Made by a program: the position numbers and the translations under genes. The notes below the pieces were generated by a model. The model was not told where the DNA came from, made no database searches, and saw only the letters and a program-made list of their open reading frames with translations. From Geosiphon pyriformis uo1 (Eukaryota; Fungi; Glomeromycota): 64,000 nt of DNA. Every line of letters begins with the position of its first letter. The first letter of the stretch is position 1. The stretch lies in NCBI GenBank assembly GCA_016748015.1, contig JAAOMT010000282.1, positions 1 through 64,000 on the forward strand, given 5' to 3'. Below are positions 32,816 to 52,365 of this stretch, one piece after another.

Positions 32816-33548
32816 ATGTTTCAAATCAAACAAGATTTCAATCACGATTCCAGTCAAAATAATGACAATTCAAATCTCCCCGAATGTTCACCGCAGTTCG
32901 TTCCCATCATCCAAATTCCATTCCCCCCAACTATTAGACCTGAAGAATGTATTAACATAAAGGAAGGTAAACTTCCATCAAAATCACCGAATGCTTTTAT
33001 CATTTATCGTCGTGCTTATCAAAAAGCAGTGCGAGAAAGTGGTCAAGTGATGAGATTAAGCAAGGTTTCTACAATGGCATCTGAAGCTTGGAAAAATGAA
33101 CTTGATTATGTTAAGAATGAGTATCGAAATTTAGCCACACAAGTTGGTATTTATTTGACTAACTTACGTGCAAGAGAATTAATCCAGAAAAATCAAATGC
33201 TCGATCTCTTGAAATCAGGAAATAAAACTTTTATTCACAATATTGAAAATCAACAAATTATTAAAGATTTGTCGTCGGTTGAAAAAAAACAGTCACTTTT
33301 ACAAGTTCCATGTCAAAACAATCACTCTTTATCCCCTTCGGACTCGGCTTATTATGGTAGTGATTTTGGTGATTTCGAATTTGAAAATAACAAAAATTTC
33401 GAATGCGATAAGAACATTCATTCCGATTTTTACCTCTTAAATTCACCAAGTCACTCCCCTTCTTTTCCCGCACCCTCAGAACAGAATCTTTGGGATCTCC
33501 AAAATAATTTTGAATTTGATTCTGTTGATTTTACTGAATTGAACAATT

Positions 33549-33593
<45 letters not shown>

Positions 33594-33871
33594 TAAATTA
33601 TCTGAACACTTCAATTGACTCATTTTATCAAGACTTTATTCAATTTTGTCAAGCAAATAACTTATCACCTGAGATAGACTTTCTTAATAATCCCTACCTT
33701 TCTTCGATAGGATTCTTTCCTGAACAGAATGAAAATATGCTGCTTGACCCTTATGCAAATATGAACTTTCAAATTTCCGAAAATTTAAATTATCAACCTC
33801 AAGAAAATGATGAAATTTTATATTCATCTATTTCTAATTATGCTACCATTTTGTCTCCTATGAATGAATAA
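32816..33871 (+). CDS. MATA_HMG-box transcription factor (351 aa, intronless)
   Basis: First ATG at 32816 (the track's start at 32789 is TTG). HMG box PSKSPNAFIIYRRAYQKAVRESGQVMRLSKVSTMASEAWKNELDYVKNEYRNLA preceded by PFPPTIRPEE. Acidic, aromatic, Asn-rich C-terminus resembles an activation domain and has a poly-N tract. Confidence 0.92.
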
Positions 33872-38300: not shown

Positions 38301-39413
38301 AAAATATGTTTCTTTAAATAAAGAATATTTTTTTTTACTTATAATTCCAAATATTGAAATAGATATCAGAAATATTCAAATGAGTTAATACTTAAAATTT
38401 TAATATTTTAGCATAATGATTTAATTTTATTATCATTTTTTTAGTTAAATTTTTAATAATAATATATATTTATAAATTCAAAATTATCATATATCTTTTT
38501 AATTAGATTATTAAGATATTTTTTAAATTAAAAATAACATTCCAAAACTGGCAATAAAACAAAATTAAGAATAAGCATAATTAAAATGAAAGAATAGTAA
38601 CTAAGTTTAATTAAATCAAAAGTTTTAATAATAAGAGAAGAATTATATATATAGATAATATAGAACTATTCTAGTTAGTCAAGGCATAAAGTTAAAAATT
38701 TGATTCAACCTTCAATATTTTAAATAAAGATAGAATTATTTTTTGCTAATTATTCCTAAAAGCTGATCCATAATAAAAACAAACATAAAAGATTAAATAA
38801 GTTCAAAATTATGCCCAACTAAAAAATTTATGTTCATCTTATTGCTATTTTTCAATCTAAATGAAACTACTAAAAATACCGATGTATTTAAGTGTCAACT
38901 AAGAAAATAATATATAATAGGCATAGCGGGTTTTGATAATAAATAAATTTGTTGAAAATAATGAAAATAATATTAGTTATATAAGATATTTGATTTGATC
39001 AAGCATGGAATTTTAAAATTACAAATTATGGAATATCCTCAATAAAAATATTGATATTACTCTCCTAGAAGATGAAATCTTCAAATCTTTTGGATATTGC
39101 GCCATTAAAAAATTCAGAGTAGAGTAAATAAGGTAGTGTTAAACCATAAAACATATTCATCATTTAAGCTAATCTCAGTAATTATGATGCGTGCTGCCAG
39201 TCGAGTGTTGAAACTCTAGAAAATAATACTGATTAAAGAAATATATAGGAATCAATTATTTTCGCCCTTTTTAAATTATAAATAAATTCAAAAGTTGAAA
39301 ATTAATTACCTTTTTAAATATAAAAATGTCATATCTTTCAGTTTTTTATAGTGAATGTGATATCAACTATGACACCTACCAGAATCAATATAATAGAAGC
39401 AATTGCAAAGCTA

Positions 39414-40549
39414 TTACCCTAAATGAACAAAAGTTATTAAATATTCAGTTAATTTACAAGTTAAAATAGAAATTGCCGTTAATATTACTGTAATTAAATT
39501 TGGCTTCGTTCTAAGGTTGACTAAAGAAATAGTATTAGATGTGACATCTTTAGAATTATCTGGGATTTTAAACCTTGATTTTGAGAAAGATTTCAGGTCA
39601 TCTTGGTTAAGGATACTTAAATCAGGAAATTCACTCCGATGTCTTAAATTATTTATCTTTGCTGCTTTTGAATAGAATTTACATGTTTCTTCCAGGTTTT
39701 TCATTGTTTCTCATCCATTTTCAGAGCACCACCCAAGAGTATATAATTCACTTGAGTTTCCTCGTTTGGCTGTTTTTGAATAAAGTTTAAATATATTTTC
39801 CAAATTTTCTGCAGTTCTCCACTTATTTCGATAACGGGTTCTAAGATTATTTTGTGGACTTAGATATCCTACTTTTTCGAAATTTTTTATTGTTTTTCAC
39901 CCAGGAATAAAAGAGTTTTACAAAGGTATTGTGCAATTAAACCGCCTGCCCCTGCTATTTTCAAAGAAGTTTAAATGCTTTTTCACCTTTATTATAATAA
40001 AGTACAAGACTTGTATTGTGCTAAGATATCTCCTATCTCTGCTGCTTTTGAAAGGAGTTCAAATGCTTTTTCCTCATTTTTTTTTTGTTCCCCTTCTATT
40101 TTATAACAATCTGCAAGAGCGCATTGTGCAAGGACATCTTCCACCTCTGCTGCTTTTAAAAAGAGTTCAAATGCTTTTACTTGATCTTTTGTGGCACCAA
40201 TTCTATTGCTCTAACAATAACCTAAAAAATATTACCCAAAAGCATCTTAATTTGCTATTTTTTGAAATTCTAAAAAGGCTTTTTTTAAATTAGGAATGTT
40301 TCCAATTCCATGATCAAAAAAAAACTGAGTAAACTATGATCTATTGAACACTTTGAACTTTTATTTTTCAAATAATTAAATAAGTCTTCAGGTGTTTTCT
40401 GATTGTGCACAAGATATTTTTACCAAGTCAGCAACTTTTGAATATTCACTAGCTGAAAAATTGGTCACACTTTCTTTGATGACAATTAATGTCCATTCAA
40501 GCCAGTTGAAGAGTAAAACTAGATTTTCAATTGATGGAGTTGAAAACAT
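39414..40549 (-). pseudogene. Pseudogenised paralogue of the Sel1-like repeat gene at 14813-15727
   Basis: Starts MFSTPSIENLVLLFNWLEWTLIVIKESVTNFSASEYSKVADLVK versus MSSTLSIQKKTAPLEWLEEVLIVIKKNLAIFSANEYSKVADLVK, then frameshifts and stops. SLR fragments recur down to about 39660. Upstream block ttgaagaaatctgaaacgt is shared by both copies. 3' end approximate. Confidence 0.88.
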
Positions 40550-42464
40550 GATTTTCAAGCATCTAAAAATGGATTATCAAACTTTGAATATTTTATATAA
40601 GTAGAGAAAGGTTTTTAAAGAGTTATTCTTGCTAAATATTTAAGCATTTCAACCTATAATTTCGTTAAATAACATTCTCAAAAAGGTTAAGTTTTGAAGA
40701 AATCTGAAACGTTAGAATATAAAAAAATAGATGCTTATTTTATAAAGGTAAACTTCCCTCATTTGCATTGATTAAATGGCAAAAAGGTGAAATATGCTTG
40801 TAATTGTCTTATTGCTATTTTTTAATTTAAATCAAAACCTAAAAGTTGAGTTATACTCTGATTGGTGTCAATGGTTCATAGTATATTCTTTAGCATTTTC
40901 TGCATGGATAATCTAGTTCTAAGATTGCAGATGGTCTTCTTTACCCTAGACGCTTCTTTTACTATTTGTATTTCATTGTGTGAATAAAACCAATTTAACT
41001 AGACTATAATTCAGAAACTAATTTATTAATTTATCATGGAAAAATTTTAAACCTTTAAATTTTAAAATTGTTATCTGTTTTAAACGTCTTTCACCTTGAT
41101 CAGTAGATGAGTATTACTTCTAATACATGCTTATCTACTAATCAAGATATCGATAGAAAATTAATAACATTTTGAACCATTTAGTTGAAATTTGAATATA
41201 TGAGATAAAATATATTTACAAAATTTAACCCAGAAAATCTTTGCCTTGATATTATGTATGATTAATTTTTAAAACCCAGCATAAAATTTGATGTATTATT
41301 ACATTATAAAATAAAAAACATTTTTGCTGTAATAAAACAACCAGTAAAATTTACTCGAAAAAAGAATGAAGTATATTGAAACTTAGAATGTAATTTTCAC
41401 CAAGTTTATTAACATTCAAGTTATGGAATATGAGAACAGATTGGTTCAAAATTTTTAATATTTTGATTTTGAAGTTTGAAAATTTCTTTTCATTTAAGAA
41501 TACCATAACGTTACGAGCAATTTCTTTTATAATTCATTTTGAAATAATAAATTCTGCTATCTCTTTATATGAAAAAGTTTAGAACTTTTATGTCAAAGTA
41601 TTTTAAATAAAAAGTTCTTCAATTGATTTTATTTCAGGTTTTAGGAATAAATCGATCCTTCCCAGTCAAACTCGGAATGATAATATAAAATTAATATGAA
41701 AAAAAAAACAGGAGGATCAATTATTATTTACAAAAAAATTAGTTGATACGAAGTAAAAGTTAGAAGAATTCAAAACAAAACATATTGGTTTCGTGAGGCT
41801 ATAAAAAGTATTAATTCTTGTTTTGTAAATTTATTATACTGAAAATCGTATTCAATGAAATAATATCTGTTCAAACCGCTTTGGTAAACCCTAATTCCAA
41901 GTCTATTCGAAAACTTTATGACTTTAATTTATAAATTTACATTAGTCAATGTATCAATTTTCTTAAAAATCTTAGATTTTTATACTTTTTTATTAATTCT
42001 TTAAATCTGGGATAAAAAATAACCAAATTTATTATGTCTAACTCAAAAAGGGATAAATTAAAAATTCAGTCTAGAACAATCTTCGTAATTAGACTAATCG
42101 CTTCAAACACATGTTAGATTAACTTTTTTCAATTAAAACGCCTAACATTTGATGGGATGATTCGTCTCAAGATTTGGTCAAACTAATTAAATAATTAAAG
42201 AAAAATTAACTAAATATTTTTAAAATTTCCAAATTAAATACCTTTTTTTAAAAATTTTTCGGCATTTTAATGTATAAAATAAAATATTTGACAAAATTTA
42301 TTTTAGAAAAACATTATGCTATTTATCCATTATGAAATTATATACATACTGAAATATGTTAAATTTTACAAACCTACTAATAAAATTAATCTTTCATTTC
42401 TCGGAAAATCTAAAAAGTTTTATCTACAGTACTCACAAAAACTAAAACGTAATTTGGATGTGTA

Positions 42465-43324: not shown

Positions 43325-44079
43325 GCCAATTAAAAATATGCCATTCTTAAATTTCAGAGTGGGACACATTGTTAATTAAAATAATAAAGGCAAATATTTT
43401 GAAGCTTCTAATGAATAGACACAATAGGAAATAAAGCTGACTACTAGATAACACAATACGTTGAATGGGTTTTCAATTGCATGCCTTAAAACTATATTTA
43501 AAAATTTATCGAACTCTCATATCCTTTGAAAATTTCTTTAGTATACAAGTGACACGTTAGACATAGCGTCACAAGAACATGATATAATATTAAGGTCCCT
43601 GAAGAACAATACCTAGTTTGAAATCTATGTTGTACATTCTACTTTAGAAAGTTTTTTTTTGTTTTTAACAAGCTTTTAAATTCAAATCAAGATTAAAAGT
43701 GGAATAATTGTTTAAAATAAGGTTTTCATTAAAAATAAAATGTAAAAATTGTAGAAACCATTTTTTTTTCAGTTGGACATGATAAGCCATTCAAAATCGA
43801 AAATTGTCACACTAAAAAATGAAATTTACAAATATCAAAATTAAATTGAAAGCTATAATACAATTTGTAACACTGTATTTAGTTTACCATTATATCTATA
43901 GAAGAACAATGAAAGCTTTACTTTTTATTTCTAGAAAATAGAAAAATATTTTACAATTGTTATTTTCTTTATAAAACTCACCTGAAGTCTTTGCTACTTT
44001 TTTAAATTTCAACACCTCTCATCTCTCAAAGACAAAAATCGCAATTTGAGTTCACTTTATCAAAAAACTAAGAATCAAA

Positions 44080-44259
44080 ATGCATCAAATCAATACCACT
44101 TTAAGAAATCAAACCGCTTTGATCTTCAAAACGTTTGAAGGAAGAGAAAATACTAGGAAGCCATTAAAACCTTCGCAAACTTATCAAATGAATACTCCAA
44201 ATGAAACGAACCAAAGCCAATTATCGACGTTCAGTGAAGGTGGTTTACCTTGGTTCTAA
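44080..44259 (+). CDS. Candidate small ORF (59 aa), unknown function
   Basis: MHQINTTLRNQTALIFKTFEGRENTRKPLKPSQTYQMNTPNETNQSQLSTFSEGGLPWF-stop. TATAAAA at 43970-43976, pyrimidine-rich leader, caaaATG context, locally raised GC. Confidence 0.4.
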   Translation: MHQINTTLRNQTALIFKTFEGRENTRKPLKPSQTYQMNTPNETNQSQLSTFSEGGLPWF

Positions 44260-44336
44260 AACCAAAGTGGGATAAAAATTACGACGTTCAGTAAAGGTGT
44301 TTACCTGGTCCTAAAACCAGTGTGAGATAAAAATTG
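44225..44336 (+). repeat. Imperfect tandem duplication, about 57-bp unit x2
   Basis: cgacgttcagtgaaggtggtttaccttggttctaaaaccaaagtgggataaaaatt followed by cgacgttcagtaaaggtgtttacctggtcctaaaaccagtgtgagataaaaatt. Confidence 0.85.
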
Positions 44337-45163
44337 TAAAGTTAAAAATTTATTATTTATTTAGTGAGACAAACTGGAATTAAGTTGTAATTCAAGTTGA
44401 CATAACTTCAAACTATTCAATAGTAATTAATTGTATATAAAAATAGTGACCTAATATTTAAATCTATAATACTAATGTAAAAAGATATTCAGTTGTTTCT
44501 TTGATTTTCAAATGCAGCAAACTTGTACCAGATTAATTAAAATATTTTATAAATAAAATCTTTGATTTACCAAAATAATTCAAAAAAAGCCCTTGGTCTT
44601 TATGGGGTGTACCAAAATTACGTTTCAAAACTTTGTAATTTTTATGCGACCTCTAACGGATAAACAAGGCAAACTTATCTTTGGAATTGATAAACTGTAA
44701 ATTGAACTTTGGATATTCCCGAGCTTGCTCTATTTACTATAGTTAATTCTCATTTGTCAATCAAAAATAGCCAAGAATTACCAAGAATTATTTCAAACTA
44801 AAACAGATATTCAAGTACAAAGTGGTAGTCAAATATAAAATAAAATACTATTACCAAAATACTTCAAAAATTACCATAGGAATGGAAAATAATTATGTAG
44901 AAAATTTTTCTTGAATCAATAGAGTGATTTATTAAGGTTTTTCATTAGATCGAAATTTCAAACTTCATTTAATTTTTCAAAAATTTTTTTAGAAATATTT
45001 TATTGGCTAGCTCAAAAATCCATGAGTTTACATAAAGGGTATTGCTTCAAAACAATACCCTATTCTAAACCTTGGAACATGAAACATGAATCATAAATCA
45101 TGAAATATTTGTCATAGCACAATTATTAACAGAAATTGGATAATCGTAACTTTAGAGTAATAA

Positions 45164-45575
45164 TTTTTAGCATTGTTCGTATATATTCTTCGTACAACAA
45201 TGTGCCACATGATTAACAAAAACCTGTTTTTAGCATTGTTAATTAATTCACAGATACCCCATAAACACTTAATAAATCTCCTTAATGGCTGAATTTGAAA
45301 ATGAATGTACTAGTTAAGATGATATCAAAAAACAATGCTCCGTCTGCTCTATTCCCACTGATAATGATTAAATTAAATTAAATTTTGAATATTATTTGCA
45401 TTTTATACATTGTTTGGATAGCTAAACAATGGGGGTCTGCCGAATTATTAATTAAAATAGAACAATAAATTATATCGGTTATTGTCAAAAATTTTGGTTT
45501 TTAACATTCTGTTTCAATTTACATTGTTTTTAATGACAGGTGTTAATATGAAGGTTATGAATTTTTTCTATAAAA
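45164..45575 (+). promoter_or_regulatory. Promoter with clustered SOX/MATA-HMG-type sites (AACAATG) and TATA box
   Basis: AACAATG or CATTGTT at 45171, 45196, 45234, 45331, 45408, 45425 and 45522; AACAAT at 45461; TATAAAA at 45569-45575. Confidence 0.75.
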
Positions 45576-45634
45576 TTGGTTGTGCTCTCCCAATTTCTTT
45601 TCATTCAATCAAACTAAAATAACTAAAAGAAAAG

Positions 45635-45668
45635 AAAAGAAAAGAAAAGAAAAGAAAAGAAAAGAAAA
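45635..45668 (+). repeat. (AAAAG)n microsatellite in the putative 5' UTR of the CaaX peptide gene
   Basis: Directly visible pentamer run between the TATA box and the ATG. Confidence 0.9.
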
Positions 45669-45715
45669 AAACTATAACAACATTCAAAGTAAATCAATCA
45701 AAAAACTTAAAGAAA

Positions 45716-45847
45716 ATGCAACCAACAACCAACAATCAATCTTCATTCAATCCTTTATCAATAATTGCTCCTGGCAACGGCTCTATTAAAGGACCAACCG
45801 GTGACCCAGACGATGGTAGCGGTACCGGACAATGCTCTATTATGTAA
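45716..45847 (+). CDS. Putative CaaX lipopeptide (a-factor-like) pheromone precursor, 43 aa
   Basis: MQPTTNNQSSFNPLSIIAPGNGSIKGPTGDPDDGSGTGQCSIM-stop. Terminal CSIM farnesylation motif, sole Cys, no signal peptide, GC-rich island, aaaATG context, upstream TATA and HMG-site cluster. Confidence 0.75.
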   Translation: MQPTTNNQSSFNPLSIIAPGNGSIKGPTGDPDDGSGTGQCSIM

Positions 45848-47862
45848 AATTTGTAGAGTATTGTTATTGAGAAGTCTCTTTTCTTGACACCGCCATTATT
45901 CTTTGCGCGTAAACTTTTCACCGAATCGAAATTCGTGAAAGTTTCTGGTCAAAATCTGAGGAAAACGTCAGGACTTTATTCAAATTAGTTGAGATCCAAA
46001 TTGAACTCTTTAAATCATTAACTAGTCATTAATAATGAACTCAAAGTTAAACCTATCGTGACTATTCGAAACCAAATGATATAGATAATATTCTTGTATT
46101 TAATTATTCATCTAAAATTTTTAAATTTCGACTTGTTTTACATAATGTAATTAATTTTACCAAAGATCTGATAAATTTGTTGTTATTAAATTAAACTTGT
46201 CAAGAACCACAAATTCTTTTTTCTCAAAATCTTTTAATCAGATTTTCTTACAACTACCGGTTTCGTTAGTAAAGAAAATCTTTGACCATTACTTAAAATT
46301 AAACAGAACAAACCAAAAAATTGACTCATTCAAGACCAGAAATTGAATAAAGAATTCTATACGCATACCAATTATGTGACCATATTAACTGAATTTAATT
46401 TAAATTAAATGTTTAATTTTTTCAAATTGCCAACCCGACACGACCTACAACCCAATTAATGTACTCGGGTCAGATACGGATTCGAAAATATACTAATTTT
46501 TTTTTGACTTTAAGTAAAAATACTTACGAAGCTTGCTCTTTCTCTAGGGTCAGGTCAGAACGGGTTGAAATCGGGTCGGATCAATTCCAAACCCATGTCA
46601 TGAATATTTTTATAACTTATTAATTATTAAAATTGATAAAATTTTTGGTGATGTTATTAATTGAAATTGAAACCAAAAATTATCATGAAATTACTTTTAA
46701 TTCCTATTATTAACTCTTTTACACATAATTTCTAAAAAATAAATAGTTAAAATTATTGAGAGATTTTTTTCTAATTCACTTTCAGTAATTATTATTAATT
46801 AAACAATTTAATATTTTATAACTTTAAAATTTGTTAGTTAAGATATAAAGTTATATTATTAATTTTTTATCGAATTCAGATAATTAAAAATTTAGTGTAA
46901 TTTTTAAATCAATTTTTTTTGATATTGATTTTAATTTATTTTTTTATTTTTTATTAATAATATAAAGTAATTATAACATAAAAAATGCTTCACAATTTTA
47001 AAAACCTAAATCAATTATTTTCTTATTTGTTTAGAGATCTCTGCCTAAAACAAAAGAATAAATATTAAATGTTTTAAATATTCTTGATTAATATAAAAAC
47101 GCAGCAAATATTAAAATATAAATTTATCACAACAATAAAAAAATAATAGTTTTGATATTAGGCATAACCGAAACGGTTTATTATTAGCAATCATTTATTA
47201 TTTAGTGAATAGAAGCTGCGAGAAGTTGATTACTATATGCATATGCATTTTAGTTGATATATCCTTTATTATTAAAGAAGACAAAAAAAGAAAAGGAAGG
47301 CAATAAATAAAATCATAATTAAAAACTAAAAAGTCATACAGGAGAAAACCGAGCTAAACAAGTTCGGCAATTACCAATATTCTACGGAATATCAAGCATT
47401 AGGGTCATCAAAGCCGTTATTAGATGATCAAAAATAGCCTTAGCTTTTAAGTAACCAGCGTTAAAGTTAGAAAAGTTAGAAAAGTAATGAACAATGCAAT
47501 ATAACGAATTAGTCATATTGAACAACGCAGAAAAGCCTGAAGAGAAATTAACTAAAACTTTTTTTCTACTGGAAAAAACACTGATATTGCTAACCAAGTT
47601 TTTTTTTATACCAACCACAGACGAATTCTAAATCGAAAAGCTAACGACACAAAAGAAATAGACATACGCGAGCTATTTTTTTAGCAATTATTTAAAATAA
47701 GGGAAGAAATAGTCGAGGACGACGAACCAAGGCAGAAATTACTATAAATAAAGCCATGATTGGTTTAGAACTTAACAAAGAAAATCAAAAACAAGAGCAC
47801 AAACTTGTCAATACAATCAAATTAAAGGGAAAATATTGTGCATCTAATAAATAAAACAGCTA

Positions 47863-47948
47863 CGGTAAAGTCCTGAAAATAAGCAACCCTCTACATCATC
47901 AATCTTGCACCAAATTTAGGATGGTCGTTTATTTTCGGGACTTTACCA
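47863..47948. mobile_element. 86-bp MITE-like element with about 26-bp terminal inverted repeats and TA flanks (Tc1/mariner/pogo type)
   Basis: Left end TA|cggtaaagtcctgaaaataagcaacc; reverse complement of right end TA|tggtaaagtcccgaaaataaacgacc. Confidence 0.7.
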
Positions 47949-47952
47949 TAAA

Positions 47953-48052
47953 TAAAAAATTAAATCTAACATCAACTAGAACTAAAAAATTAAATCTAAC
48001 ATCAACTAGAACTAAAAAATTAAATCTAACATCAACTAGAACTAAAAAATTA
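47953..48052 (+). repeat. Perfect 30-bp tandem repeat, about 3.3 copies
   Basis: Unit taaaaaattaaatctaacatcaactagaac repeated without spacers. Confidence 0.95.
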
Positions 48053-48599
48053 GAATTATTCAAGTTTGATATTCCCTAACTATTTTTTCATTTTTAAATT
48101 CTTTGTTAAATTGAGAATAATATTTTAAAACTGATATTTTTAATGGTATAATTTATTATGTTTCATTTACTTGTAATAATAATATGTTTATCTAAAAATT
48201 AAAACAATTGAGTTAACAATTTTTTTTTAATTTAATTAAACTGATTAATTATAAATAATAAAATGAATATGATAATTAATAGTAAATCGAAATGTAAAAT
48301 TTGGTGAATTCACCCATAAATGAATGATACTTTCATGGAATACCATTTTAGAAAAACGGAAGTTTCCTATGAAATAAGATAAACAATCAGATAAAGTTAA
48401 TAATATTGTTTAACTATTGTTGACGTAATCGATGCCGACGTAATAATAGAAATTCGTTTTCGAAATAATAATAATAATAGATAAAAATCTTTATAAAGAA
48501 AGCCTCTTTTCACGATTCAGAGCAAAATATATCGATAAAATTCATCAACTCCTCTTTTTATTATATTCTCATAATACTTATTCGGATTTTATTTACGCA

Positions 48600-49088
48600 A
48601 TGGAAACCATTGAAATTAAAAGAACTCGTCCGGAAGCTCATGATTGTAACAAGTGTGAAGAGTGCCAAAAGAGCATAAAAAATAACAAGAAGAATTATTG
48701 CGGCGCATGTCAAGTCTTATTTCTTGAGAAGCTTTATAAGGACTTCTCAAGCGGAAACAAAGTAGTTGACGAGTTAATTAAGAATCCAATTTATACACCT
48801 AAATACAATCAAAAACATCATTTTGAATGGATTCCGTGGGATCGTTTAAAGGATATTAATAAAATTGCAAAAGGAGAATTTGGTGTTATTTATAAAGCAA
48901 CATGGATTGATGGATTAATCGATTTAAATAGTATTAAACATCATGGTGAAATGGATTATAAAAGGAATAAATTTACAAAAGAGAAAGAGGTAACAATAAA
49001 GTTTATAAACACATCTTTTCAGAAGAATGAAGAACTCTTTAAAGAGGTATTATTATTATTATTATTATTCTTATTATTCTTATTATTC

Positions 49089-49145
<57 letters not shown>

Positions 49146-49784
49146 TCATTATTTATTATTATTTAACTATTATTTATATTATTTAATTAACTATTTTTTT
49201 GACTTTTGACAGATAAATATACAAAGAGCTATATTCATTGAGAGTGGGAAACTCTCATATACCTCTCTAATAATAGGGATTACTCAAAATGCTGAAACAC
49301 TCGAGTATGGGATTGTGATGGAGCTTGCAGAAAGTGGAGATATGCGAAAATTTCTGTCAAAAAATTCTCATTCTAATCCTCGGAATAATAAATTATGGAC
49401 AACCAAAAATATTATTAAAGGACTTGATAGAATTCATTTTAAGCAATCATCAGAAAAGAACATTAAAGAAACTGCAGAAAGCGATGACACAAAAAAGACT
49501 TTAACTAAAATTCATCCAAACGCAGTTTATACAAGTCGTCTTTTAACTTTAAAAATGATTGAAGGATCTAATGGTTTGTTCATTATTTAATTTATTTAAT
49601 TTATTTAATTCAATTTTGGTTTAGATTATATTTTTAACTTGTTTTATTTTCATCTATGAATTCTAATTAACAAGAACTTATTTATATCCCTGAAGGTAAG
49701 AAGCTAAAGAAAGGTTTAATATGATTATTTACTCTTGTTAACGTTTTTTTCTCGGTATTTTATTTAGATGACTCTAAAAAATGA
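48600..49784 (+). CDS. Truncated tyrosine-kinase-like family protein (N-lobe only; pseudokinase or young pseudogene); exons 48600-49046, 49213-49573, 49675-49695, 49768-49784
   Basis: FSSGNKVVDELI, FEWIPWDRLKDINKIAKGEFGVIYKATWIDG, VTIK, IIGITQNAETLEYGIVMELAESGDMRKFL and KGLDRIH are followed directly by the tail KIHPNAVYTSRLL. No HRD, DFG or APE motifs. GT-AG introns keep frame. Confidence 0.8.
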
Positions 49785-50765: not shown

Positions 50766-51076
50766 ATTTCTTGTTGAATTTATTTTATTTCAAACAAACT
50801 AAATAAAAATATGTAATTAGAATATGAGAAAGAGTTGAAAATACTTTTTCTTAATTTTATATCTAAAAATAAAAACCGAAATTAATGTAAACCATACAAA
50901 TATTATCAAATATTGTAAATTATCTTGTAAATTTTAAAAAATGTTGTTTGACAAAATATGAAAAGAATTATTTGAAATTTTTATAAGCAATATATACGGT
51001 GAGTATACAATAAAAGATGCAAAAAAAGAATTTTGAAAGTATATATATAAAATATTTTAGATAAAAGATTAAATTA

Positions 51077-51120
<44 letters not shown>

Positions 51121-52365
51121 CATTGTCAAAAATATTGGGGTACTAAATTATTAATTATTTGGATAAATAAAAATAATTTTCATAATTTAACAAAAAATGT
51201 TTAATATATATATATAATTTATTACAAAAAAAAATTAAATAAAAAATTTTTTTGTTCATAAACAATTATAATTAAAATTTAAAATACATTTAATAATAAT
51301 AAACAGAAATTTTGTTAAAAATATAAATTTTTTATAAAATATTTTATATTCAAACTATTTCGTTTTTGTAAACTTTAAAATATAAATAGAAATTATTAAT
51401 TATTTAAATAATAATAATAATAATAATAATAATTTTCGTTTTTGAACTTTTATTAAAAATCAAAGAAATTAGTAAAAAAAAAATTTATAATATTAATTTT
51501 AATTTAAGAAAAAAAAATTTTATAGAAAAACTAGATTATAAATATTGTATCACTAATATAATTAATAAAATTACCCATGATAAATTTTTTAAAGTTACAA
51601 TATGATTGTTTTGCAATTAATTTTATTATCAATAAAAAAAATATATTTATTTTTAATATTTATTTTAGTTAATTTTAATGACCAAATATTAATATTATAA
51701 TTTAAATTTTAAAATTTGTATAATTAAAACAAAAATTTTATTCAAAATTTTAATAATTACAAATTATTATAAAATATTTTGTTAATTGAGATTAATATTT
51801 TTTTAAAATTGATTTTATATTAAATAATTATGTAATATTTAATCTATTTTTTTTATTTTTATTCTAATTTATTTACTACATTTTTTACTTATTATTATTA
51901 TTATTATTATTATTGTCATTTTTATGTTTAGGTTGGCCATAGTTAAAGCAGATAAATAAAATTAAACAAGTGAGGCCCAACCTTTATCTACGCATATAAA
52001 ACTAAATAAATTTTATAGTAGACGCAGCTCATGCTTTGTCCGCACGTGACCAGCTACCCGAGCCAGTATAATAATAAATAGGTATTATTGCGTACGCGTG
52101 ATCAGCCACCCGTTTTGTGAAAATAATTCTTAAAATATATTATCATGATTTTGTAATTATTATTAAAAATCCCAAATAATTAATTTGATAAAACAATATA
52201 TTATTGTTTATATCAGAAAAATATCAAAGAGCATTTTTATTTGATTAAAATTTTACGAAATTTAAAGATCGGTCATTTAAAATTTAACTTTGAAACAAAA
52301 ATTTAAAATCATTGAATGTGTAAAATCTTAGAATACATTTTCCCATGACAACACAATTAACCAGT

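Follow-up and report, generated by a model that had tools for sequence, protein, structure and literature searches.

A multicopy family of short CaaX-ending genes in Geosiphon pyriformis predicted to encode a-factor-type lipopeptide precursors

The a-factor genes of Saccharomyces cerevisiae, MFA1 and MFA2, encode short, single-exon precursors that lack a signal peptide, carry an N-terminal extension with an N-X site, and end in a CaaX box followed by the stop codon; the system to which they belong further comprises Ram1/2, Ste24/Rce1, Ste14, Axl1/Ste23, Ste6, and Ste3. Mature a-factor corresponds to residues 22-33 of Mfa1 (PMC2134810). The M-factor precursors of Schizosaccharomyces pombe also have an N-terminal extension and a CaaX box (PMC2134810). 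Their genes, mfm1-3, which are under the control of Mat1-Mc and Ste11, are dispersed copies giving one product, and their promoters, as well as that of mam1, contain ACAATG or ACAATA sites at the position of the M-box, to which the HMG protein Mat1-Mc binds (PMC1693924). Srikant et al. (10.1101/2021.09.28.462209) devised a sieve for a-factor-like genes that retains multicopy ORFs of <100 residues conserved in relatives, with CaaX directly before the stop codon and Asn followed by an uncharged residue (N-X) 5-20 residues from the Cys. The pheromones of basidiomycetes (tremerogens, Ustilago Mfa, Cryptococcus MF, and those of agaric B loci) are CaaX-derived as well, and are farnesylated and sensed by Ste3-type receptors. 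To our knowledge no sexual cycle has been observed in the Glomeromycota. Halary et al. (2013; PMC3834313) described one STE3 together with STE6 and a MAPK cascade in Rhizophagus and Glomus and predicted a farnesylated ligand, but found no pheromone gene; Mateus et al. (2020; PMC7490403) found that HMG genes are induced when two isolates coexist and saw no pheromone genes; and a 2019 survey (PMC6339444) described pheromone chemistry as largely unknown for most early-diverging fungi. Our literature search, mainly outside subscription journals, yielded no account of pheromone precursors ending in CaaX from the Glomeromycota or from other Mucoromycota.

We analyzed a stretch of 64,000 nucleotides, referred to below as the window, which the initial annotation had assigned to a probable Glomeromycotina genome; its source is indeed Geosiphon pyriformis (Archaeosporales). 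Translation of positions 45716-45847 (+) yielded 43 residues with CSIM at the C-terminus followed by a stop codon. The GC content of this ORF is 43%, compared with 25.5% for the 64-kb window, its 5' leader is 56% A, and its start context is gaaaATG; the GC-rich island, TATA element, A-rich leader, and aaaATG start described in that annotation were all found as stated. The locus has the following features:

45171-45528, no strand assigned: cluster of seven AACAATG/CATTGTT sites (45171, 45196, 45234, 45331, 45408, 45425, 45522) plus AACAATA (45461), resembling HMG-box/M-box promoter elements
45568-45575, + strand: TATA box CTATAAAA
45576-45715, + strand: A-rich 5' leader with an (AAAAG)9 microsatellite at 45625-45668 and without a YAG splice acceptor
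45716-45847, + strand: single-exon ORF for the 43-residue precursor, from translation, under purifying selection
45716-45778, + strand: predicted N-terminal extension, residues 1-21, ending in the invariant Asn21, a candidate N-X cleavage site of the Axl1/Ste23 type
45779-45835, + strand: predicted mature peptide, residues 22-40 (19 aa), with putative boundaries, made up of a block conserved across genera (22-28), a species-variable block (29-39), and the Cys
45833-45844, + strand: CaaX box CSIM (CVIM, CVIV, or CIIW in Ambispora)
45680-46081, + strand: transcript-like footprint in assembled contigs, including a 3' UTR of ~180-230 nt, its RNA nature judged from the footprint

A Cys at position -4 is by itself common, occurring in 11 of 485 short ATG ORFs in the window; chance origin of the CaaX ORF was ruled out because it exists as 22 intact copies in three species and is under strong purifying selection. 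The window copy is solitary within the 64 kb and has the highest AACAATG count among the 22 copies examined. Elsewhere in the window there are tandem repeats at 44219-44335 (a unit of ~55-58 nt, present twice, with a low-depth contig from sequencing run X3 at 44223-44451) and 47953-48052 (a perfect 30-nt unit, 3.3 times), a 12-codon repeat at 12242-12505 within a 242-aa ORF, and two segments of extremely low GC content (9-13%), at 23001-25000 and 51001-52000, which are probably mutated repeats.

Protein searches with the ORF product detected Geosiphon models 74-100% identical to it and further models in Ambispora leptoticha and A. gerdemannii. When the genomic DNA was read, 22 intact copies were recovered, 16 in Geosiphon, 4 in A. 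leptoticha, and 2 in A. gerdemannii. Those of Geosiphon lie in the window and on six contigs; some are solitary, and others form clusters with as many as five copies within 12 kb. Three more Geosiphon models (P0010, P0011, and P0014) suggest additional copies, and the verified 16 are a lower bound. Twelve Geosiphon copies encode the identical protein despite a DNA divergence of ~10%. In a set of 14 Geosiphon copies, 39 distinct changes are synonymous and 3 are non-synonymous (ratio 0.024; P=2e-21, binomial); for all 16 the numbers are 44 and 17 (ratio 0.12), with the amino-acid changes mostly in two copies. The copies at L003:7772-7903 and L007:10001-10132 have 6 and 8 amino-acid changes but keep the ORF and CSIM; they may be decaying copies, or may represent a second specificity, as the L007 copy differs in the predicted mature segment. 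Coding identity among the Geosiphon copies is ~89%, whereas their flanks align at 55-69%, near the level seen against Ambispora flanks, and similarity between copies stops ~50 nt past the stop codon and 200-500 nt ahead of the ATG; no transposon was recognized within the shared stretch. As flank identity is only 55-69%, we concluded that the selected unit is the promoter plus the ORF and not a transposon. The gene is real and protein-coding.

In a codon tree of the 22 rows (midpoint-rooted for drawing only) the copies clustered by genus with support of 100/100, indicating lineage-specific amplification. The two A. gerdemannii copies, L006:8307-8435 and L011:10001-10129, differ strongly in residues 29-39, which suggests more than one peptide specificity within one genome. 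No degenerate extra copies were found in the window or in the loci examined. Searches of Glomerales, Diversisporales, Paraglomerales, and metagenomes, of a kind that readily misses short unannotated ORFs, gave no homologues, and the peptide matched nothing in Pfam or the ESM Atlas. Two metagenome matches (L009 and L010) were discarded as chance similarities in GC-rich contigs lacking the remainder of the ORF, and coral EGF-repeat and sushi-like matches in the representative protein search as low-complexity chance matches. Microsynteny between L007 and L005, which share an Ig-like membrane-protein gene (neighbors 30% identical), was rejected as ancestral because the L007 copy nests, with weakly supported placement, among young Geosiphon copies. 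Sel1-repeat genes and a kinase-like gene in the window (14813-15727 (-), about 39400-40660, and 48600-49590 (+)) resemble neighbors of the L003 and L004 copies; this shared neighborhood is probably unspecific, since such families are large and expanded in this group.

Each of the 22 copies begins with Met1 in an A-rich context and is preceded by an in-frame stop codon, 21 of the 22 have a TATA-like element 103-147 nt 5' of the ATG, and in the window copy there is no YAG acceptor between TATA and ATG. Thus the ORF stands alone and is not, as the initial annotation had allowed, the last exon of a longer gene. We compared contigs from four sequencing runs over positions 43500-48500; the types of run were guessed (X2 "RNA? 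probably DNA", X3 "DNA?"), and such contigs give neither strand nor level and can be dropped by the filter. Run X1 covered all 30 bins, as DNA does. Run X2, from a different study, gave a single contig at 45680-46081 and nothing else in the 5 kb, and run X3 gave contigs at 45696-46025 with a depth of 47-75 relative to 0-4 in the flanks; both the X2 and the X3 contigs pass through the stop codon without a splice joint. This footprint, obtained in two studies, is likely due to an unspliced transcript whose 3' UTR measures ~200 nt. A lack of transcript had been named earlier as a possible objection to the gene; what we observed was a gene-only, transcript-like footprint in X2 and X3, from whose shape we infer that it is RNA. 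Run X1 showed two haplotypes throughout the same 5 kb, with dozens of SNPs and indels and contig depths of ~110-160 versus 70-110, consistent with a heterokaryon or with pooling of the sample. The X2 and X3 contigs carry solely the window allele at 45877, 45906, 45948, and 45958, which hints at expression bias toward one allele of the peptide gene, in a type of data that drops minor variants.

The precursor is 39-43 residues long in all 22 copies, with ORF length and stop position conserved across genera, and each copy ends in Cys-x-x-x-stop: CSIM in 16, CVIM in 4, CVIV in 1, and CIIW in 1. All Geosiphon copies have CSIM and four of the six Ambispora copies CVIM, the atypical X residues (W and V) being those of two Ambispora copies. 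The CaaX Cys is invariant in the 22 copies across genera, which disposes of the earlier reservation that CaaX might not be conserved in homologues. A CaaX box with Met at X favors farnesylation, and by the CaaX rules Cys40 is very probably prenylated. In a ten-copy representative alignment Met1, Asn6, Gln8, Ser9, Phe11, Asn12, Asn21, Gly26, Pro27, Thr28, Asp30, Gln39, Cys40, and Ile42 are invariant. The N-terminus is polar with no signal-peptide-like hydrophobic core (9-residue hydropathy maximum 1.2), and neither of the features of alpha-factor-type or KEX2-processed repeat proteins, a signal peptide or KR-separated repeats, is present in the 43-residue product.

Asn21 occurs in all 22 copies, 16-19 residues ahead of the Cys (19 in Geosiphon, 16-19 in Ambispora). 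In Geosiphon the Asn of Asn21-Gly22 is the sole one in the 5-20-residue range; the residue after the Asn is charged (Glu) in one A. leptoticha copy. Cross-genus identity is 86% for residues 22-28 in five of the six Ambispora copies (43% in the other), 27-64% for residues 29-39, and 50-70% for the pro-region. Because Asn21 is invariant and residues 22-28 form the best-conserved block, the mature peptide likely begins after Asn21 and would have 19 residues; within it, residues 22-28 may be a processing or export determinant and residues 29-39 a species-specific segment. The mature peptide of 11-12 residues proposed earlier did not hold up: it equals the variable segment and would require a second cut, for which we saw no motif. 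The window gene passes every sequence filter of Srikant et al.; those filters alone admit hundreds of ORFs per genome, and the added weight comes from the selection data and the promoter. By every sequence test run the product resembles an a-factor precursor, a likeness that does not imply membership of the class by function.

Beside MFA1 and MFA2, with which it shares the precursor layout and the presence of several copies, the Geosiphon gene differs in lying outside the Dikarya and in having at least 16 copies rather than 2, and its predicted mature peptide is acidic and Gly-rich with 19 residues, whereas that of yeast is hydrophobic with 12. Protein searches with the Geosiphon product gave no database-level homology to yeast a-factor. 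Aligned without gaps and in the same numbering as Mfa1, the product has Ile24, Lys25, Gly26, Asp30, and Pro31 in common with it, that is, 5 of the 11 residues after Asn21, and these five are invariant or nearly so within the family. Shuffling gave P values of 4.5e-5 (anchored) and 6e-4 (any offset) for this match, a post hoc comparison that could have been made with dozens of known pheromones. We regard the match as suggestive only, and deep homology of so short a peptide would be surprising. In its polar, Gly/Asp/Pro/Ser-rich composition the predicted Geosiphon peptide may resemble tremerogens. Farnesylation and Ste3-type sensing, which belong to the basidiomycete pheromones, are predicted for the Geosiphon product, and in contrast to those pheromones Geosiphon has one dominant product and no allelic series, yet the two A. 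gerdemannii copies differ.

Seven of the 14 AACAATG/CATTGTT sites of the 64-kb window lie 545 to 194 nt 5' of the ORF, where 0.07 would be expected (Poisson P ~1e-12). Between -400 and -120 there are 33 AACAATG sites in the 16 Geosiphon copies (0.8 expected, ~40-fold) and 8 in the 6 Ambispora copies (0.4 expected, ~20-fold). De novo, AACAATG was the first-ranked 7-mer upstream of the copies in both genera (13 of 16 in Geosiphon and 5 of 6 in Ambispora), with AACAATR as the wider consensus. The promoter P values count related copies as independent and so overstate significance. Since the flanks are barely alignable between genera, the motif must have been kept or regained. AACAATG is missing within 800 nt of the two copies that have diverged most (L003:7772 and L007:10001). 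The cluster matches the M-box of the S. pombe M-factor genes and would be a binding site for an HMG factor; the HMG-site promoter proposed in the initial annotation is borne out as a motif conserved in two genera. Relative to mfm1-3, Geosiphon has up to seven M-box-type sites, no intron, and a longer predicted mature peptide, and the promoters of the copies lack AACAAAG, the Ste11-type box.

The HMG-box gene reported near the ORF also exists, as a single exon at 32816-33871 (+) with a Pfam HMG_box match of E=2e-6, ~12 kb from the ORF. The exact sequence of its product is absent from the protein collection, the closest matches, 38-46% identical, being from Diversisporales, some with two per contig. 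The linkage implied by that report was not upheld: no other examined copy has an HMG gene in its flanks, a tblastn comparison of the window HMG domain with loci L001-L011 gave no match, a conserved HMG linkage of the Mucorales sex-locus type was not encountered among these loci, and there are no AACAATR sites in the 1 kb 5' of the HMG gene. Related fungi have >100 HMG genes (PMC4771724), and because peptide copies are also many, one HMG neighbor would be expected by chance; its position near the ORF is probably coincidental.

Neither STE3, STE6, nor processing genes were found in the flanks examined (up to 10 kb, 21 copies), and there was no STE3 among the long ORFs of the window. Linkage of a pheromone gene to a Ste3 gene as in the basidiomycete P/R locus was not encountered in eight loci and the window, and the Diversispora loci reached through HMG homologs contained neither STE3 nor a CaaX candidate whose promoter was rich in the motif. 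In its layout, with dispersed copies, no linked receptor, and an M-box-type promoter, the family resembles S. pombe mfm more closely than the basidiomycete P/R locus. The putative pathway of Rhizophagus (PMC3834313) belongs to the same phylum and has a single STE3, STE6, and the MAPK cascade, whereas the peptide family has so far been found in Archaeosporales only and no Rhizophagus homolog was detected. Of the peptide-pheromone system that the initial annotation took to be uncharacterized outside the Dikarya, STE3 and STE6 were already published for Rhizophagus (PMC3834313), which left the ligand as the missing part.

We propose, with a probability of roughly 0.68, that the gene encodes an a-factor-type farnesylated peptide that is cleaved, exported, and sensed by the glomeromycotan Ste3. 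This proposal is supported by the multiple copies, the 39:3 ratio of changes, the conserved Cys40 and Asn21, passage through the Srikant sieve, the AACAATG promoter, the transcript-like footprint, and the orphan STE3. An HMG-box factor would bind the clustered AACAATR sites, whose enrichment we observed, and drive transcription from the TATA box; the mRNA, likely unspliced, would be translated into a 43-residue cytosolic precursor, which is under selection at the protein level. Farnesyltransferase would then modify Cys40, the last three residues would be removed and the Cys methylated, and an Axl1/Ste23-type protease would cut past Asn21 to release a farnesylated peptide of ~19 residues, perhaps trimmed further. 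Export would be by an ABC transporter of the Ste6 type and sensing by a Ste3-type GPCR, either on a different hypha or within the same mycelium, acting through the STE MAPK cascade, with STE6 and STE3 both published for Rhizophagus; the many identical copies would supply dosage. If this is so, a role in mating or compatibility has slightly better than even odds, and one in vegetative recognition, anastomosis, or density sensing falls slightly short of even; the presence of one dominant product with one receptor is compatible both with a signal specific to a cell type, as in ascomycetes, and with a species signal produced constitutively. Several findings count against the proposal. The predicted mature peptide of 19 residues lies near the upper limit of the known lengths and is very polar. 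In yeast pheromones conservation is highest in the mature part; here the C-terminal mature part is less conserved between species than the pro-region. There are, in addition, no receptor or processing genes in the flanks examined, no homolog beyond Archaeosporales in searches that readily miss short unannotated ORFs, no AACAAAG box, and two atypical X residues.

Other explanations accommodate some of these facts. The product might be an intracellular prenylated micro-protein, anchored in the membrane and neither cleaved nor exported, that serves as an adaptor, acts on prenyl-binding proteins as a decoy, or coats membranes in abundance, the copies providing bulk. All 43 residues, the N-terminus included, are frozen in Geosiphon and fairly conserved in Ambispora, the copy number exceeds the 1-19 curated pheromone candidates per yeast genome (10.1101/2021.09.28.462209), and no receptor is linked, all of which would suit such a protein; it would leave unexplained, however, why HMG/M-box sites cluster in the promoter, why an Asn is invariant at the spacing seen in pheromones, and why the segment beside the Cys varies between species, and neither Pfam nor the Atlas matches the product to a known small prenylated protein. 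We consider this improbable. About as improbable is a lipopeptide exported by the a-factor route to another target, another organism or another receptor, either as a symbiosis cue (e.g., for Nostoc hormogonia or a plant host) or as an antimicrobial, amplified in Geosiphon for its partnership. The lineage-specific amplification, with its 100/100 grouping by genus, is in keeping with that idea, the transcript-like contigs probably derive from symbiotic material, and in Fusarium pheromone machinery has been co-opted for host sensing (cited in PMC4771724); but Ambispora, which has no Nostoc partner, shares both the family and the promoter motif, and the group has an orphan Ste3. A further point against it is that we know of no prenylated peptides acting as cross-kingdom fungal signals.

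It is very unlikely that the real products are instead the longer, spliced proteins in public gene models, or that the ORF is the passenger of a repeat, with the CaaX incidental. NCBI models do splice from GT donors that lie inside the ORF or at its end and continue into downstream exons, so that the CaaX is lost, but the appended tail is different for each copy and includes fusions to unrelated neighbors, and CSIM and the stop codon are retained with synonymous changes, contigs run unspliced across the stop, and the limits of similarity around the ORF enclose no transposon. Models P0009-P0011, P0013, P0014, and P0017 are artefacts that fuse the peptide ORF to lipase-like, kinase, kelch-like, or Ig-like membrane-protein neighbors. 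The exact 43-residue product is absent from a collection of 15 billion proteins, and the family has probably gone undescribed because public gene models splice the CaaX away.

Returning to the a-factor-type peptide, we also considered a more far-reaching and doubtful version, in which the glomeromycotan Ste3 has the product as its cognate ligand, the product is homologous to the Dikarya a-factors, the pattern Asn-x-x-Ile-Lys-Gly-x-x-x-Asp-Pro is inherited, the module is older than the Dikarya/Glomeromycota split, and the peptide governs a cryptic mating or nuclear-compatibility step. Were it true, the lipopeptide-pheromone module would predate that split together with its HMG (M-box) control, and the peptide would possibly be expressed from one nuclear type of a heterokaryon.

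The Geosiphon peptide provides a testable candidate signal for mycorrhizal relatives that lack observed sex, for which STE3 and STE6 have been known since 2013 and the ligand has been missing (PMC3834313). As a defined lipopeptide that can be synthesized, it makes the question testable without genetic transformation, and the combination of a short CaaX ORF, an Asn site, clustered AACAATR, a TATA box, and several copies can serve for searching other arbuscular mycorrhizal genomes. If the proposal is true, lipopeptide pheromones would be older than the Dikarya.
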